11,136 bases of DNA from Paraphysomonas bandaiensis. Lineage: Eukaryota; Protista; Chrysophyceae. Made by a program: the position numbers and the translations under genes. Location of the stretch: contig CBFFRP010000220.1 of assembly GCA_965644295.1 (NCBI GenBank), positions 1-11,136 of the forward strand. Reading direction: 5' to 3'. The notes below the pieces were generated by a model. The model saw only the letters and a program-made list of their open reading frames with translations. It did no database searches and was not told the DNA's origin. Numbering within the stretch: position 1 is the first letter of the stretch; each line of letters opens with the position of its first letter. Positions 786 through 10,182 of the stretch are shown here, piece after piece.

Positions 786-3700
786 TTAAGTCATTTGTAC
801 ATCACCTCTAATTACTTCCACTAATTCCTCAAATTTCCCTTTCTCTAAACGCAGCAGAAAATCTTCTTTCTGAAGTTGCAAAAATTCCCACTCGCTGCCC
901 ACGTAGTAGACCCGATGTTCACAAGATACATCATCATAATCTTCTATTTTTCCATCATAGTATTTCGCATCCTCAGACCAGTATACTTTCACCGGTAATC
1001 TCAGGACTTGAATATGAATACAGCTGAAGCAGTCTGGGCACACCCACTTCCAAGCGTCCGATATAGAGGCAGACGGGAGAGTGGAACAACAATTCCCGAA
1101 TAAAGTCCACTGCAATATTCGTGTAAGGTAGAAAGTATATTCGTGTCTTAGATATACCAAATCATACTTATAGAAATTAACGTACACAACATTAACGTAT
1201 CACTATCAAACCACACATATATTCAAAAAGTCCCGACAAACCTTTTCCTCACAAATAGCACAGTCACGAATCGTAGTGCCATCTGTAGAGCATTTATCGT
1301 CGCACTTCTTAATTATCACAGTATTTGTGGAGTATATATTGAGTGCGCAGCGTCCGGGGGAGGATTCAAGCCATAGTTGACGTAAATAAGCAAATATGCC
1401 ACCCAATACCGAAGAATCCCACCAAGTCTAAAAAAACAAATCAAATTACCGGTGATACACGGAGAAAAATAATATATAAATTATCTTACCTTAGACATTT
1501 CGTCAGTAATCTGACGACCATTACTGAGCATTTCGTAAAAGTCTTTAGAAAACTGTGCAAACGAATGGTACAAGTGGTCCTGAAGCTTTCGTTTCATGAT
1601 ACCTAAGCTTATTGGGTGTACTACCAGGGAATTGTACTTCGGGAATATATGATACGGAATTTCGTCAAAATCTTCTGACAGCATTCTTCCATCCGATACA
1701 CTCGTTTCACCCGATGAGGGCACAGATGAAGGCAGGTCCTCAACAGATGATGTGCTGTATTTACTTCGCTGTTTCGATGCTCGACTCGAGGGCAGCCGGG
1801 TCCGACGGACATGTGCATATTTGGGCTGAGATGATGAGCTTCTGTTATTCCACCAGTGTGTGGATATATCTTTCTTCTCAGCTAAACAGCGAATCAATGC
1901 AGATATACAGGCATCAGAGGAGCCTGCTTGGTCAATATTTCCAAAAATACCTTCACATGGGACGCACACATCCGATAGAATAGCAAGAATAGTGGCCAGT
2001 ACACGCTCCAAACGTACCGCACTCTGAGCGGCGCAATATCTTGATGAGTTTCCCACTGCAGTCCATTCACTACCCTTGTTGGAAAGAAGGTCTGGGACGA
2101 ATTTGTCAACAGCACACTGAAACCCTGATCCACTGTCAATAAATCGATGCACCATCCTATCTACTAATAACGAGTCCACCCTAGGTAGAGTGGGAACAGC
2201 GGTTTTCGCTAATATTGATGTCGGTGAATCTCTCTGCTTCATACCTGCTGGGGAATCTTCATCGGGAGCTCTCTTCCTTTTCTTCGGTATTACTTCAGCT
2301 CTGATTTCTTCTCCACATTTCCCTTCACCGCCTTTCTCCATCTCTGCTATATCCTTCGTTTTAATCTCCACTTCCAAATCATATTTCGGGACAGACTTCA
2401 TTTTCGACTTCGAGGTTATTTTTCGAGTACTTTCATGAAGGTAGCAGTCTACATGCGCCCCTAACTCCGTTTCAAAGTCAACCATTTCGCTTTCACCCAC
2501 CTTTCTAAACATGTCTTCGCGAACAATCCGAGAATATCCGGAATATCCACCACTCTTCGCAAAATTGGAATGTGAAAGTTGCTGGCTACCCAATTTCACA
2601 CTCAGCTCATGTGACACTTTCGCCGGCACAGTAGGAGGTCGAGGTTCAGAGAATGTGAATGCAGAAGTAGAAGTTATAGCTGTATCAGATTCGTCATTTT
2701 GTTTCTTACGCGGACGTCGCTGTTTCTTCGTTAAATTTTGAGATTTGATATCACTACCAGTGTCATTTTCATGACGCAACAGAGCTACTGGAGCAGTTGT
2801 GTGATGCTTTCGCTTGATAGGTGCAATGCTTGTAGAAAGTTCTAAACTCGGTACACCGAGTGGAACTTGGAGAGGTTTACTCCCTCCTCCACTTCTGTGT
2901 ATAATACCACTCCCAGATTCTATTTCATTCATTGTCACTGATTCAGCACTAGGCGACTGCATCACTTCCTCCGAAGTCCGCAAACCGCGAGACTTCTTTA
3001 GCCGTCTTAGGGCGAGTTCTATATTGCGAACGAATATTTCTCCTCGTGTACTGTAATATTTCTTTTTCGATTTTTCTCGCACTCTGATTAAATCTAAAAT
3101 AATTAGCGCATTATTCAGGGAACGCCGTAAACGAGCCACTTCCTCTGAATCAACCCAGTACCCATTAGGAAGACGATATATACCACTCGGAATGTGATTG
3201 GAGCAAAAGTATTCCTTAACCCCATTTCTAATGCGAATAAAGCAGTCCCCTGCACGAGCAGCACAAATAGGATGAAATAGCTGTCCACACGACTCATGAT
3301 GGGAACAGCGTGTACACAGGCCGGTCTTGCGGTTACAGTACACACAATTTTGTTTCTTACCATCTTTACAAATCTGTCCGCTACGAGTGGGTTTGTAGGT
3401 AGCACAAAAATGATGAAACCACTTCCCATCAACTGTAATAAACATGCCCCCACGTCGAGGGCATGCTGCACAGCGAAGTTCCGGTAGAGGAGCAGCATCT
3501 CGTCCCTCGTCCTCTTGCTTTATGTGTGCATTTTTCCGGGTACACGAAACGCATTTCCAATTCGAAATGTCTACATTTTGCAGGGAATTGGGATCAATAG
3601 TGGGGTTTGAAGGTACCATTTCCATTTCTTCTGCTTTGTGGTATCCTGTCCCTGGGAATCCAGTTTTGGTAGCTTGCTCATTAGTACTGGGCTTCGCATT

Positions 3701-6700
3701 CTTAACTTCCGACATTGGAGTGTGATCACACTGGGACTCCATACAACGAATGGATTGCGCAGACAAAGAAATAGCACATTCGAGACTGTCATCTAAAGGA
3801 GAGGGAGGAGAGAGGGTTGGTCCACTTTGATGATCACCGCGTGATGTAATTTCAATATCTTGCACTTGAAGAGATGACATCGTAACAATTCGCGTACGAC
3901 TCCCCAAGGATGGTACAAGGCACTTTCTGTGTACACTTAATGCACAATCTACGCATTTGACAAGCCATGCATGGGAATCTGGAATATTTTTTTGTGAGTC
4001 AGATATAACCTTCTCGTTTTCATTCACTTCGGATACTTTCGGAAATATTTTTCCTGCTGGCCCGAGACAGATCGCACATATGTCTGATCCGTATATGTCG
4101 ACATTCAAATCCTTTGGCTTCACAGTACCTACCAGTCGCTTGGTGGCATTCGATATGCTTTGATTCTTCTTCTTCACCCTCCGGCGCTTCGGAGCTCGAC
4201 CAGGAATATAGCACAAATCCAGCTCACTTATCATATATAGACGTCGCAAGTCCCTCTGCATAGCCCGAGCATGAGAAACCCCTGTTGGCGTATGGGACAA
4301 GCAATGAAAGGTAAAGTTCAAGCCAGAAGGGTACATACACTCACTACCAAGCTTGGGTTGACCAAGAAAAGACGGGTCGGTGAGTTCAGTGAATATGTAC
4401 AGACCTGTAAACCAAGCACATATAGGATGGAATGCATTCCCACAGTCCTTAGCGCTACAACCTACCATATAGCCTCCTCCTTTATTACACACCGAGCACA
4501 CGTTTGTGGATATCGAAGTGTCAGGAGCATTGGTGATAGAACCTTGCAGTTGCGATTCACAACTAACCCCAGGCCGTTCAATTGATATCAACGTAGCTGC
4601 GGAACTAGCACTGATATTATCTCGTCTTGCACTCGTGCCAGGGCCTGAAGAAGTCGGATCATTCACCGGTTGTGAATTAATCAGAGAGCTATCTTCACGT
4701 CTTTCAGCGGCGGTGAGACCCATAAATGGCACCCTTGATATGTCGACAGGGCCCATTCGCTTAAGATCATGTATATCTGCTTTTCCGGACCATATGGCGC
4801 ATGCGAGATGTACCCATCTCCCGTCTGTTGTTTTCTTCAGCGCACCATGGTAAAGAGGGCATAAGCAGCATGACACTAAACCCTTTAAATTTTCATTTTC
4901 AGAGCCGAAGTTCAGACCTTGAGATAAGTCTTTAATATATTCACACCTATCACAGAAAAAATCGCCATCCGGAACGACAGAGATCCCGTAACACATCTGG
5001 TGCACGGCAGTGTTACACCCATCGCAAAATATAATCCTGTTTGCATCGTCAGAGCTGGTGCCGTCAAAGCAACACATACAAACGGCGTCGATATGGTTCA
5101 CATCATCATTAATAGCCTTGAGCTGTTCTTCTGTCGGGCGACCCTCGACTTCTATGGCCCATGACGCAGGGACTACATCAACGTGATGTTTGTTAAAGTC
5201 CTTAGTTTGGTCCCTGATCCCGCGCATCACACTACGACAGATGCTACCCCATATCCGTTGGTTTGTATACGATGTCAAAATCGCTTTCTCGTCGGCCTGC
5301 TTCTGCTTTAACTGCTTTACAGCAGATCGAGCTAAATTCACAGCATCGGATCTCAGTAGTCTATCCACAACACCAGTCATGGACTCCAGCAAGTCTCGAT
5401 ATACTGCTTGATCGTGTCGAATCAATTCACAAATTTCATCATTCTCCTCCTCGAGCGGAATTAACTCCCGATCTCCAAGCAGGACCGAATTCGATGAACT
5501 ATAAGACTCTACACCATCCAGTTTTATTTCCGTTTTCCTTAACACACCCTCACTAGCTGGGGTGTTCATAGTGGTCTGTACCCCCAATATACCGCACGCT
5601 GTGAACAACTTTTCAAAGGAACTAGGGTCGTTTCCAACACTCCCACTATTCTCATAGCTGTCATCAGTCTCACTGCAGCAATGAAATCCTTTGACTGGGT
5701 ATCGCCATTGGCTATTCTCAGCACTTGTATTGGGGTCACGTTGACGCAAAGAGAAAACACATTTTCTACGTTTTGGTCCGTTGAATAGGACACTAATATA
5801 CTGGGGCTTCTTCTCATCTATGAGCAACACCATTATCAGCGACAAATATAAAATATATATCAAGTATTAATACATACCTGCATCATCAAATCCCTCAAAA
5901 GGGAATTCCAATCGCGTCAGGTAATGAACACCACTTTTGTCAAAGCAAAACGCTTCGTCAGTCGACGGCTGTCTTTCACGAATTGCTTTTGACTGCGTTT
6001 TCACCGGAGACATGGCGTCGAGTTCCGTGGACACCTCTTTTTTCAATCCGCTTGCTTTCGCGGTGTATGATGCTCTTGCAGATGGGATTTCATCAATAAC
6101 ATTGATGAGTTTCGTGATCTTATTCTCAAACTCACCACGCTTGTCGGGGTCCATAAGAGCAACAAAGTCTCGATCAGAGAGGCCAGAAGACAATACCTCA
6201 CTGTCCCCAAGTCTTAATTTCTGAACAAAATGTAAAACAAACTCCATGTGTACCACCAATGCAAGTAGGTTCATACCTCGATAGTATCCTTAAGAGATCC
6301 CAACGGCGGTGGAATGTAATTCTCATAGTCTTTAAAGAATGGGTTTGCTGGACCCAATCTCAACCTCGAAGCCATGAAATCTATCCACTGTGTACGTACC
6401 ACACATCAAATTAACAGTCATATTCCTATGAATCCTACGAGTGCAGATGCACAATGGTCGTATTGCAGCACTACGGATATATCAATGAAAGCATTTATCA
6501 CCTGCTCGTCGTGATCTTCAGGGAACCACATTGCTACAACATCCCAGAAATGATTAAGGTCCATGGGCTCGGATTCAGCCTTCCCGGGCCATTCTGAAGC
6601 CGTGTAGACCGCATAACCAGCTTTCTCCGAGAGGTCCTACAAAAAAATGAGATATCAATCGCACTCGTAACAGAGGCTACACGAATTTATGTATGATATG

Positions 6701-8030
6701 GTATTCACATGTCGTGTATAAACACTAGTGTAACAAAACATACAGTGCGGTATACAGTCAGAGGTTTAATGTCATAAATTACATCGGCAGCAGCACCTCA
6801 ACTTCGATTTCCTCGCTGGTGTCGTCTACGTTCCCTCCAGGTTTAGAAATACCTTTTCTGCTTATAGACCTATTCTGTGATGAATTTATTATGCCATTTT
6901 CAACGATCTTTTCAACTTCTGGTGCAACTTTCATAGCGCTAGTACGTTGAGCACGCGTGGGTGTGGATGCATTCGAAGGGCTCCCGCGCCTCCTGGGGGT
7001 ATTTTTGATGGGTTCGTTATTTGAATTTTCAATGCCACTCCGCCTACGATTCTTTGAACTTTGATCCAACGAATGAGAATTATTTTTGGGCGTTGCTACC
7101 GTATTCTCAACAGAATGATCTGGCAATGAAGAGCGATTTCCGTTCACCTACCAAATACGCTTTCATTAAGAAATTCCTTTCCTATTGGGGAGTAATACAG
7201 TACATCACGATACACTAACCATCGTTATACCAAATATGACTGCCTATAATGGCACACAGTCTGACACAAACTACTGTCACATATATAGCATATACTCTGA
7301 GATCAGTCGTTTCAATTCTCATCCTATGATTTCTGATATAAATCTTGATATTTGAAACAAATCACCTTAGGTTTGACAGGTCCGTCGACGGATGATGCAT
7401 GAAGTGCACAAAATATTTCAAATAGATGCTCGCTTGGGTCTATTGGACTTTTTACAACTCGATGAGTGAATCCTTTATTGTGACGTACAGCACACCAAGG
7501 GTGGGCCCCTACACAACATCGTCCGAAACAGCACTGAACAACAGCACCTTTATGGGAGCAAAGCTTACAACCAATCTTGTAGCGCGCCTTGTCAATATGG
7601 GATACATTATATATACCACCCTTGGAGGGATCATAATAGACTTTGGGCACCCAGAGGGCACAGAGACCGTGAACCCACTTTCCTTTCTTCTCAGTTTTCT
7701 TGAATGCCCCTGAAGTGTGTTGACATATCACACAACGAGTTTTACTAGGCTTTCCACCTCCTCTGCAAACCTCACAATACCTTATAATGACAAGGTCAAT
7801 TCAACAATCGGATTAACACACGCATCTCACCATGCGCCTTCCGGAATAACATCAACACCATAGCACAGCTGGTGCACCGCTACGTTGCAGCTTTCGCATA
7901 TAAGTATCTCGTTGTTCTCATACACTGTGCCGTCCACACATACATCGCAAACTTGATCCTATATCATACTGTTACAGTCACGTATACGGGGGACTTAGAG
8001 CACTACCACATCAGAATCGTCTGCGTCCAT
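786..8030 (-). CDS. Multi-exon BRPF/JADE/Nto1/AF10-like chromatin protein (about 2,110 aa): 3 PZP modules, Ada3-like region, bromodomain, Tudor
   Basis: Exons assembled by hand with GT-AG introns and continuous frame: 8030-8007, 7958-7831, 7780-7366, 7147-6797, 6636-6502, 6387-6277, 6220-5878, 5817-1490, 1427-1242, 1109-786 (alternative last acceptor at 1166). Splicing restores an intact PHD finger (...IPEGAW|YCEVC) and the last bromodomain helix (...DEMSK|[12 protein letters not shown]). An in-frame TGA lies just upstream of ATG 8030. The boundaries of exons 1, 4 and 10 are the least certain. Confidence 0.88.
840..1010 (-). other. C-terminal Tudor domain
   Basis: [40 protein letters not shown] fits the Tudor pattern V-x-V-Y-W-x-x-D-x-x-(W/Y)-Y-x-G-x-I-x-x-Y-D...H-x-V-x-Y...E-x-L-x-L. 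Confidence 0.85.
1370..2011 (-). other. Bromodomain resembling SMARCA/polybromo types, with an insertion after helix Z and an intron before helix C
   Basis: [15 protein letters not shown] ... [67 protein letters not shown]|[12 protein letters not shown]. Confidence 0.85.
3055..3145 (-). other. BRPF/JADE/Nto1 post-PZP (EPC-II-type) helix
   Basis: [25 protein letters not shown] matches the family pattern RLRxDLERARxLxELxRKREKxK. Confidence 0.75.
3194..4078 (-). other. PZP module 3 (PHD - Zn knuckle - extended PHD) with large insertions
   Basis: CAIC...[12 protein letters not shown]...WKCVSC; [11 protein letters not shown]...KWFHHFCA; CVYC...[19 protein letters not shown]...YFCSNH. Confidence 0.85.
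4292..5080 (-). other. PZP module 2
   Basis: CMCC...[31 protein letters not shown]; [27 protein letters not shown]; CSVC...[15 protein letters not shown]...HCLSH. Confidence 0.92.
5256..6570 (-). other. Putative Ada3/TADA3/Ngg1-like region
   Basis: Motifs occur in the Ada3 order: [42 protein letters not shown]...RLL. Recognised from memory of Ada3 sequences; no HMM was run. Confidence 0.55.
7396..7949 (-). other. PZP module 1 (N-terminal, split by one intron)
   Basis: CDVC...[31 protein letters not shown]; [14 protein letters not shown]...[11 protein letters not shown]; CKLC...[17 protein letters not shown]...FCALH. Confidence 0.92.
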
Positions 8031-8178
8031 TCGATCAGATCAGCCTCACATAAGCCTATCCATGAGAGACAGAGTCGATTCCTCCTTGCTTCATGCAAAC
8101 AGGAAGTGTATAGATGTGATCTATCCAATGCTGGATAACACACTACACCACCACTCCGTCCAACACCATGTACTGCTC

Positions 8179-8342
8179 TACATACATACATACATACATA
8201 CATACATACATACATACATACATACATACATACATACATACATACATACATACATACATACATACATACATACATACATACATACATACATACATACATA
8301 CATACATACATACATACATACATACATACATACATACATACA
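8179..8342. repeat. Perfect tetranucleotide microsatellite (TACA)41
   Basis: 164 nt of uninterrupted TACA units, followed by the variant units AACA AAC. Confidence 0.98.
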
Positions 8343-8525
8343 AACAAACTGTATTCTCTGTACGTACATACACTCTGCACAAGCAAGCTGTGTATGTCCA
8401 CAGACTGGCTTGGAGTTTGTGGAATATACTACATGGAATATATGATGTTACATATGGTGCGAGCTGATCTAGTGGGTTGATATCCATTTGACTATTTTCG
8501 ATCTGTGTATTTAATTGTTGATGAG

Positions 8526-10182
8526 ATGGATTTGACTCTTCGACTGTTTATCGTTTCATTGGCAGCTATGGTTAAGATATTTCTCGTGTCGTTGACGGGT
8601 GTAGTATGTGCCAAGTATCCCTCATCAGAGCCTCTGCTGCAGACTCAGGCACTTCGTCACTTGTCACGAATAAGCACATATGTTCTCGTGCCTTGTTTGA
8701 TCACTACTTCCATCGGGTATAACTTATCTGTGGAGCTGTTGATGCAGTATGGTGTGCTCATACCAGCGTGTATGATGACGATAGGTGTGTCGTATGCATT
8801 CGGATATATACTAAAGTTTATCCACGAAGATAACCCAAAACTTTATGCTTCGTCCTTTGCCACTGTTGGTAGCCCGAACATTATAGCACTGCCAATCATT
8901 GTGATGCAATCTCTCTGTGAAGAGTCTACTGTAAATGCCGATTATCATGACGATCCCCAGGAATGTTCACAAGTGGCTAATTCAATGATGTTCATATATG
9001 CAATTGGGTTTAGTCTTATATTTTGGAGTTACGGTACGTCGACCTTAGCTTCACTAAACGACTACGATGAAAGCAGTACCCGAACCAGAACCAGAAGTAG
9101 AAGTAGAAGCGGAAGTTTGGAAGGAATAGAGTTTTACCGTAAAACTGCCTTGAAAATGTACAGCATATTACAACAACCATCTCTACTTGGTATATATGCT
9201 GGGCTTTTCGTTGGGCTAATACCATCTCTCGGTGACCTTCTGTTTCACAAGTTTTCTGTCCTCAGGCCTATGGGGGGAGCTTTGATGGTTTTGGCATCAC
9301 CCGTGGTTTGCCTGAGTATGCTAATAATGAGTGCTTCTCTAGCGCATATCAATGTTGACTGGAGCGTAATTTTAAAAGGTAGTATTGCCGTAGGTTAGTA
9401 TCGTCATATTAATATTGACTGTGCAGATATAAAGAACAAAGTACTATCCCCAAGCATAGAAATGACTTCCATAAATGATGACGAAAACCAATCGTCGCAC
9501 AGCGATCCTAATGTATTAGCTATCGATGAATCACAGTTATGCTTATCCAATGGTGTGAGACGAAGTGATGCCGGGACAGAAGCCGCTAGTGGTTATATGG
9601 ATGTAGTTGCTACAGGAGAGGACGGTACAACAGTGGCACAATTGACCCCTTCGGAAGACCTAGATAGTGAAAATTCCTTCAGCGTTGACAGTAGCAAGCA
9701 GATTGACAGTATGCCACAGTGGCGGTCAGTAATTTTTATAATTCTCTGCAGGTATGCACTCGTATAAGAGTATATAATTACTTTACTCAACTGCATATCC
9801 GGTAACTTAACGTAGATTGTGTACAAGATATATGACTTTAGCGTGTGTTGAGATACACTCGAGAACATGTGGTTCAATTTTCTTCTTGTTTGCTAACTTT
9901 CTCTTTTATTTCAGGACTGTATTACCTCCAATAATTGTTCTGCCCGTTCTCTTCATGTGTGTTAAGGTAGGTGTGATCGGTGAGAGTCACCGACTTCTTC
10001 AACTTTTAATAATTGTCGAGGCGGGTTCTCCTCCTGCCAATATGGTGATAGTAGTTCTTAACCAGCTGGGATTTCATTCCGTAGCAAGTAAGGTTTCATA
10101 TACTTATGTTTTTACATATTTATTTAGCATTATATCAATTACTATATGGGCAACAATAGGGATGAGAATGATTTATTTTTGA
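8526..10182 (+). CDS. PILS: PIN-LIKES (PILS) / auxin efflux carrier family membrane transporter, about 481 aa, 3 exons
   Basis: Exons 8526-9378, 9427-9751 and 9915-10182 with GT-AG introns of 48 and 163 nt in compatible phases. About 10 hydrophobic helices. Family-like motifs: LSRISTYVLVPCLI, PNIIALPIIVMQSLC, FSLIFWSYG, RTVLPPII, EAGSPPANMV, YLFSIISITIW. The substrate is unknown. Confidence 0.88.

Follow-up and report, generated by a model that had tools for sequence, protein, structure and literature searches.

An unannotated conserved module between two PZP domains of a chrysophyte chromatin scaffold, a candidate stand-in for Ada3

The window analysed here, that is, the whole stretch of 11,136 nucleotides (nt) at positions 1 to 11,136 of contig CBFFRP010000220.1 in the Paraphysomonas bandaiensis assembly GCA_965644295.1, holds a multi-exon gene on its minus strand. 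The predicted product, of more than 2000 residues, is a large chromatin scaffold with several reader domains, namely three PZP-type blocks (PHD, zinc knuckle, PHD), a bromodomain and a probable Tudor-like end. Between the first and the second PZP of this scaffold (PZP1 and PZP2) there is a genuine conserved unit, referred to hereafter as the module, which is a folded member of a previously unannotated domain family, one with no Pfam family. It has two parts, an N-terminal helical part, which includes the EWPG..MDLxHFW motif, the PxLG motif and a KR-rich helix, and a core that follows it. With respect to function, we propose, with confidence that is about evenly divided, that the module is a docking platform for the GCN5-ADA2-SGF29 acetyltransferase module and thus a functional stand-in for Ada3, true homology with Ada3 being included in this proposal as its strong form.

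Exon structure of the module and its paralogue

Pfam searches located PHD/PZP-type zinc-finger blocks and a bromodomain in a long open reading frame (ORF) at 1481-5863, and another PZP in the ORF at 7324-7731, and direct reading of the sequence revealed three short exons between these two PZP-bearing ORFs. It is in this interval that a previous sequence-only reading had noticed four peptide strings, all of which are indeed present, on the minus strand, where it had placed them: the first motif string is found in the exon at 6502-6636, YIPPPLG in the exon at 6277-6387, and the remaining two, the second of which runs to DRLL, within the initial 200 codons that the long ORF has below position 5817. 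All introns of the module are of the GT-AG type (114, 56 and 60 nt) and have canonical splice sites (Table 1), and the reading frames are continuous through the exon model.

The exons were searched singly, with unbroken homologues from the databases standing in for the spliced product. At the first junction, homologue P0006 reads MDLDHFWNFTSSFFAEDHTREWFQYM without interruption, and it spans this junction, together with at least 13 other homologues, as ...PEDHxxxW(L/V)xxM...; P0003 and P0001, in turn, cover the third and fourth exons and are unbroken across the last junction. In addition, the module occurs once more in the genome, on contig C35 (G000:C35:149000-158999), in a copy that is 54% identical over 245 residues. 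This copy (module at L012:6102-6839, upstream exons near L012:5240-5650, with an ORF of 1662 codons) keeps both the exon breaks and the motifs of the window gene, reading FPEDHDNE, then an exon break, then QWVEFMASRL...YKPPPLGCLKDTIE, with YKPPPLG where the window has YIPPPLG. The C35 locus duplicates, in diverged form, the scaffold gene as a whole, such that the genome has two PZP scaffold paralogues.

The exon model is thus supported, as far as sequence can do so, by splice sites, by continuous homologues and by a paralogue with shared exon breaks, which bears out the claim that the motifs are encoded by spliced exons lying between PZP1 and PZP2. That the motifs should instead have arisen by chance within introns or through ORFs joined in error, or that the exons should come from separate transcripts, is extremely improbable, given the canonical splice sites and continuous frames, the many database proteins that are unbroken at every junction, and the paralogue of the same structure.

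Conservation, predicted fold and surroundings of the module

A profile of the core, built from nine sequences and used in exhaustive HMMER searches, found 128 proteins at E<=0.001, 46 of them at E<=1e-30. Most of these relatives have 1300-2800 residues, with the match to the module just upstream of a PZP, and nearly all are long PZP/bromodomain proteins; those members scanned with Pfam have PZP blocks, a bromodomain and a sub-threshold Tudor of the PTM/DIR17-like type. A word-indexed search with the long ORF retrieved eight relatives derived from metagenomic or SRA data, at 31-40% identity, plus one Cryptosporidium PHD-zinc-finger like domain protein, while the same type of search restricted to the module gave no match. 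The few members of the family that carry names are all from stramenopiles, namely Chlorochromonas danica, Mallomonas annulata and a Bicosoecida sp.; the module family occurs in stramenopile-type protists.

In 17 family members the block EWPGQxEGExMDL(D/E)HFWNxVSxxFPEDHxxxW is nearly invariant, and in most of them a relaxed, semi-conserved (I/M/L)P(P/C)LG follows 30-45 residues later. Next in the order of the family comes the helix (L)GSEKER..D..KR, which aligns to the exon at 5878-6220. In the core, the consensus runs from strands with VxFDGxxRxxCxF through two helices, D(E/D)(I/L).R.IR.DQ.AY and then Y..Q..W..V......G.RDQ..DFNK, to PASW.I.V.GRP. Judged from these alignments, the conservation of the module goes far beyond chance.

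The fold of the core was predicted with AlphaFold2 from an alignment of 61 sequences, at a mean predicted local distance difference test (pLDDT) score of 81.3. In the model, two long helices, at pLDDT 96-99 and comprising about 70 residues, accompany three strands and a short helix. For the compact homologue P0057, the whole region was also modelled with AlphaFold2 (pLDDT 72.1), with N-terminal helices, among them the motif encoded by the exon at 6502-6636, five strands and the long helices. When these two models were compared with known structures, using Foldseek against PDB, VIA-align in its wide mode and the Atlas, only generic coiled coils were recovered, at Z<=7, and no Ada3; feature searches of the ESM Atlas with the window core and with homologue P0059 did not yield usable matches. 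No known family, then, matches the module by sequence or by fold in Pfam, the ESM Atlas, Foldseek or VIA-align.

The positions of the module and of the remaining features of the window are collected in Table 1. PZP1 is recognized by Pfam in the ORF at 7324-7731 as zf-HC5HC2H_2 (1.6e-15) and zf-HC5HC2H (1.8e-12), and its upstream PHD exon was read directly. PZP2 is closest, among PDB sequences searched with phmmer, to the PZP domains of Jade-1 (4.4e-23), BRPF1 (2e-22) and Nto1 (4.6e-21). The presumed Tudor exon is without a Pfam match at E<=0.01; homologues P0090 and P0116 have a sub-threshold PTM/DIR17-like Tudor at the corresponding C-terminal position, and the window segment VKVYWSED...EWEFLQL is similar to the C-terminus of P0006.

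Table 1. Positions of the scaffold gene's features and of neighbouring elements in the window, with the evidence for each.
Feature	Position	Strand	Basis
PZP1 (PHD, zinc knuckle, PHD)	7324..7980	minus	two exons, GT-AG intron at about 7781-7830
Exon with EWPG..MDLxHFW motif, first helix of the module	6502..6636	minus	AG/6636..6502/GT, frame, conservation in homologues
Exon with WIDFMASRL, second helix and PxLG motif	6277..6387	minus	AG/6387..6277/GT; homologues continuous with previous exon
Exon with KR-rich helix and variable linker, last base opening a split codon	5878..6220	minus	AG/6220..5878/GT (split codon); family block alignment
Core beta/alpha domain (in order: strands, helix, strand pair, two long helices), ending PASW..GRP just before PZP2	5123..5817	minus	AG/5817...; family hidden Markov model match, 9.9e-54
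PZP2, directly after the module	4364..5101	minus	phmmer against PDB; Pfam PHD_2, zf-HC5HC2H_2
Start of bromodomain (end of long exon)	1493..1657	minus	Pfam Bromodomain 6.9e-09, ORF residues 1403-1457
Probable last exon, Tudor-like (tentative)	786..1187	minus	resemblance to C-termini of homologues
Long (TATG/CATA)n-type microsatellite between the scaffold gene and its neighbour	8170..8370		makes ORFs CMYVCMYV... and HTYIHTYI..., on both strands
Neighbouring multi-exon gene, PIN/auxin-efflux-carrier-like transporter	8505..10182	plus	Mem_trans PF03547, E 5.3e-15

The possible Ada3 ancestry of the module

The sequence-only reading took the segment for an Ada3-like domain on account of its short motifs. 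In human TADA3 the corresponding order is FW..V..Y, then IPPLG about 36 residues on, an L-E..R...G-L-L helix, and D-E-V..E-L-R..Q. Of this argument the order of the motifs holds, the four being found in the module as they are in Ada3 and three of them being conserved family-wide; the exact IPPPLG string, however, is limited to the two paralogues.

The Pfam profile of Ada3, PF10198, has 127 positions and a gathering score of 24.5 bits. At E<=10 this profile matched neither the window exons nor the long ORF, the C35 paralogue or the first eight homologues. A scan of 61 copies of the core, followed by 35 further copies, gave matches in one lineage, represented by P0114 and its near-identical cluster-mate P0145 (E 0.0024), and the match in P0114 falls on the first long helix of the core, that is, the DEI..I..Q helix to which attention had been drawn beforehand. 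After raising the sensitivity by trimming the copies to about 97 residues around this helix, two of the 95 copies matched, in the same register and both below threshold: P0114, with 19.4 bits (E 0.0012) at PF10198 positions 28-65, and P0030, from an unrelated lineage, with 14.6 bits (E 0.036) at positions 29-66.

How much such scores are worth can be judged from other families. The 95 helix segments touch 69 families, of which Ada3 has the best E-value, but ParM_N is matched by four segments and DUF1451 by three, that is, by more members than Ada3. Moreover, against PDB sequences the profile of the helix matches yeast Rpn7 at 19 bits, and for this reason scores in this range must be regarded as noise where a motif of this kind, an amphipathic helix preceded by an acidic patch, is concerned. 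Five family profiles, covering the N-terminal part, the core and the helix, found no Ada3 chain among PDB sequences, and searches of the same sequences with exons E5 and E6 and with P0114 returned no Ada3 either, only noise such as Rpn7 and nephrocystin. These structural and PDB negatives have low power with regard to Ada3, because this protein is largely unresolved in SAGA structures, where it is predicted to consist of helices joined by disordered linkers (PMC10226619).

Taking these data together, it is possible, although rather unlikely in our view, that the module shares true ancestry with Ada3/TADA3/Ngg1, from which it would have diverged strongly, and that it became part of a PZP scaffold by fusion, in which case Ada3 would be hidden in these lineages rather than lost. 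Several observations point in this direction: two lineages match the same positions of PF10198, on the very helix that had been singled out, with the best E-value of all families touched; the motif order is shared; and a six-frame search of the genome gave no stand-alone PF10198 match, a search that is insensitive here. A softer point is that the ADA3 domain of Arabidopsis, which spans 228 residues and has six strands and five helices (PMC8071052), resembles the module in its mixed make-up. Further likenesses are the acidic patch followed by a D-E-(I/V)..(I/L)-R..Q amphipathic helix, the long helices of about 70 residues, and a presumed bridging role within the GCN5 module. Against Ada3 ancestry, neither the exons nor any homologue reaches the gathering score, so that the identification of the segment as an Ada3-like domain is unproven; the alignment covers about 38 of the 127 profile positions, or about a third; nearly all copies, including the window exons and the C35 paralogue, are without a match; unrelated families gather as many members or more; the Rpn7 match sets the level of noise; and profile and fold searches provide no Ada3 chain but only generic coiled coils. 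Profile and structural matches to Ada3 are thus nearly lacking altogether, but in tests of low power. Ada3 is, besides, a stand-alone adaptor, unlike the module, which is embedded in a reader-rich scaffold both in the window and in its homologues.

Putative partners of the module and comparison with known PZP scaffolds

Scaffolds with PZP domains are not foreign to GCN5. A 2026 study of Toxoplasma showed that the GCN5b-ADA2A-SGF29 core carries TgPHD1 together with two PZP proteins, TgPZP1 and TgPZP2, which are reported to be adaptors that tether specific AP2 heterodimers, the complex being split by these two paralogues (PMC13601556). TgPZP1 corresponds to PfPHD2 of Plasmodium and is similar to SPC, the scaffold with several PHDs on which plant PAGA is built, and PZP scaffolds are described as stoichiometric subunits of these GCN5-ADA2 complexes, which are said to lack ADA3 (PMC13601556). 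The view that coupling of a PZP scaffold to Gcn5 has no precedent in well-studied organisms is consequently outdated, such coupling being known for SPC of PAGA, for TgPZP1/2 and for PHD2 (PMC13601556), whereas in the literature searched we found no description of an Ada3-like segment within a PHD or PZP protein.

The components that such a complex would need were sought in the genome by profile searches. The third domain of ADA2 was detected at 1.9e-27, in a gene (L009, G000:C9:93811-97038) with an exon for ZZ and SANT, an exon for the third domain at L009:1270-1905, and SWIRM in small exons. The closest named fragment to this gene is a partial ADA2A from Symbiodinium microadriaticum, at 58% identity; the named relatives of the scaffold are stramenopiles. 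The Tudor of SGF29 was detected at 6e-24 and 3.9e-25. Its two loci (G000:C128:120216-120578 and G000:C41:35508-35870) have near-equal scores, of 90 and 88.5 bits, and may represent haplotigs or stem from a recent duplication; one more match is found in a 579-codon ORF on C66. On another contig (G000:C217:4751-14517), weak SGF29-Tudor-like matches, about 17 in number, of 19 bits each and mostly 597 bases apart, lie in tandem within ORFs of 1102 and 2415 codons, which suggests a highly repetitive protein.

With this background, it is plausible that the window gene encodes a PZP scaffold for a complex of the GCN5 type, a kind that it fits in four respects: the scaffold has no recognizable EPL1 domain, although its PZP domains are closest to Jade-1, BRPF1 and Nto1; the genome has ADA2 and SGF29; there are two paralogues; and the only named relative of the whole protein is an apicomplexan PZP protein. 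In the mechanism that we envisage, the PZP domains, the bromodomain and the Tudor-like end would read histone tails and DNA and place the scaffold on modified nucleosomes, while the module would serve as docking platform for a conserved partner. This catalytic partner would most probably be the GCN5-ADA2-SGF29 acetyltransferase module, and the module would thus act as the bridge that Ada3 provides elsewhere, as in the complexes of SPC, TgPZP1/2 and PHD2 that lack ADA3. The module has nearly invariant, exposed motifs and about 70 residues of long helices. Its exons, conservation, confident fold and place in the domain order are observed, as are ADA2 and SGF29 in the genome; docking itself and the choice of partners are inferred. 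Of the suggestion that one polypeptide couples the Gcn5 module to PZP, bromodomain and Tudor readers, the readers can be retained, with the Tudor-like end as probable, and the identity of the coupling segment as Ada3 is unproven.

Some points weigh against this proposal. GCN5 could not be pinned down among the 15 GNAT matches of the genome. The kinship with apicomplexan GCN5-associated PZP proteins appears to reside mainly in the PZP domains: the match to the PHD-zinc-finger-like protein P0009 of Cryptosporidium meleagridis (7e-12) is mostly through its PZP, and the tail of the module aligns to residues 753-788 of P0009 with 1.7 bits, albeit just before the PZP of that protein. Lastly, as was to be checked according to the sequence-only reading, a separate Ada3 was sought by a six-frame search of the whole genome, in which PF10198 had no match; in a search of the same kind EPL1 (PF10513) had no match either. 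EPL1 is a domain that most eukaryotes have, and the lack of a match means either that the gene is too fragmented by introns to be detected or that it is very diverged. Since EPL1 was also missed, the six-frame Pfam search is insensitive in this intron-rich genome, and the lack of a stand-alone Ada3 is therefore weak evidence.

The main competing proposals differ in the partner that they assign to the module. According to one, it corresponds to the EPC-II region found in BRPF, JADE and Nto1, and its long helices would bundle with ING and EAF6 in the service of a MYST enzyme, as in NuA3 or HBO1-like complexes, and there would be no link with GCN5. ING1 and EAF6 are also part of PAGA in plants. 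The similarity of the PZP domains to those of Jade-1, BRPF1 and Nto1, and a core dominated by about 70 residues of long helices, could be explained in this way. We nevertheless regard it as unlikely, for EPL1/EPC-N (PF10513) was not found in the window ORFs (the exons upstream of PZP1 not being modelled), nor in any of the homologues scanned, namely P0001-P0009, P0090, P0094 and P0116; the family profiles do not match Nto1, even though full-length Nto1 chains are in the PDB set; and scaffold chains of NuA3, NuA4 and HBO1 were not ranked in the fold searches. Because the family is without the EPL1/EPC-N of MYST scaffolds, the label of a SAGA/NuA3 hybrid subunit, under which the protein had been proposed, is unnecessary. 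It would be more surprising still if the module were a lineage-specific platform for other partners, for example transcription factors, or a spacer within the polypeptide that takes no direct part in holding an acetyltransferase. This idea gains from the lack of any known family matching the module by sequence or fold, and from the ApiAP2 pairs that TgPZP1/2 tether (PMC13601556), but it has to contend with strong conservation across distant protists and with surface motifs that are nearly invariant, and such conservation favours an ancient, conserved partner over lineage-specific factors.

Returning to the docking of GCN5-ADA2-SGF29, a PZP scaffold in a GCN5-type complex is already known as a kind; what is new is a defined, conserved and unannotated module that is an obvious candidate for the missing bridge of GCN5 complexes without ADA3. 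Work on Toxoplasma, Plasmodium and PAGA indicates that GCN5-ADA2 assembles on PZP/PHD scaffolds without Ada3, and does not state which part of the scaffold replaces it. The module sits exactly where such a bridge could lie, and its alignments and coordinates can now be used for deletion mapping and binding tests. Should it bind ADA2, GCN5 or SGF29, the assembly of complexes lacking ADA3 would be explained; should it also derive from Ada3, the label of ADA3 independence would need revision, and the acetyltransferase module of SAGA would be more conserved across eukaryotes than thought. It is tempting to speculate, as a conjecture that we consider doubtful but worth stating, that scaffolds of supposedly ADA3-independent GCN5 complexes carry a cryptic, highly diverged Ada3 between their PZPs, which in stramenopiles, and perhaps in alveolates, would have been fused and not lost. 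In that case the bridge of the acetyltransferase module and the PZP, bromodomain and Tudor-like readers would be united in one polypeptide. If the module binds something else, it would still represent a new family of chromatin-scaffold domains in a large and poorly studied group of protists.

Compared with the MYST-type scaffolds BRPF1/2/3, JADE1/2/3 and Nto1, the window scaffold has close PZP domains (E 1e-21 to 4e-23). BRPF proteins resemble it, in addition, through a bromodomain and another reader domain at the C-terminal end. The window scaffold differs in that no EPL1/EPC-N is recognized before the PZP and in having three PZP-type blocks instead of one, and its inter-PZP module has no detectable counterpart in the sequences of Nto1, BRPF and JADE. 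In these proteins a helical partner-binding region follows the PZP.

The other known systems, SPC, TgPZP1/2 and PfPHD2, differ from the window scaffold in that their association with GCN5-ADA2 is described in the literature, that of ours being a proposal. The window family has, furthermore, three PZP-type blocks, a bromodomain and a Tudor-like end, and an inter-PZP module such as ours is not described for SPC, TgPZP1/2 or PfPHD2 in PMC13601556 or PMC8396726. Otherwise the resemblance is considerable. All are large proteins with several PZP/PHD readers and no EPL1 domain, and they come from genomes that have ADA2 and SGF29 and no recognizable stand-alone Ada3 (in P. bandaiensis, by an insensitive search). 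Toxoplasma, with TgPZP1 and TgPZP2, has two paralogues, as P. bandaiensis does, and the only named relative of the whole window protein is P0009, the PZP protein of Cryptosporidium.

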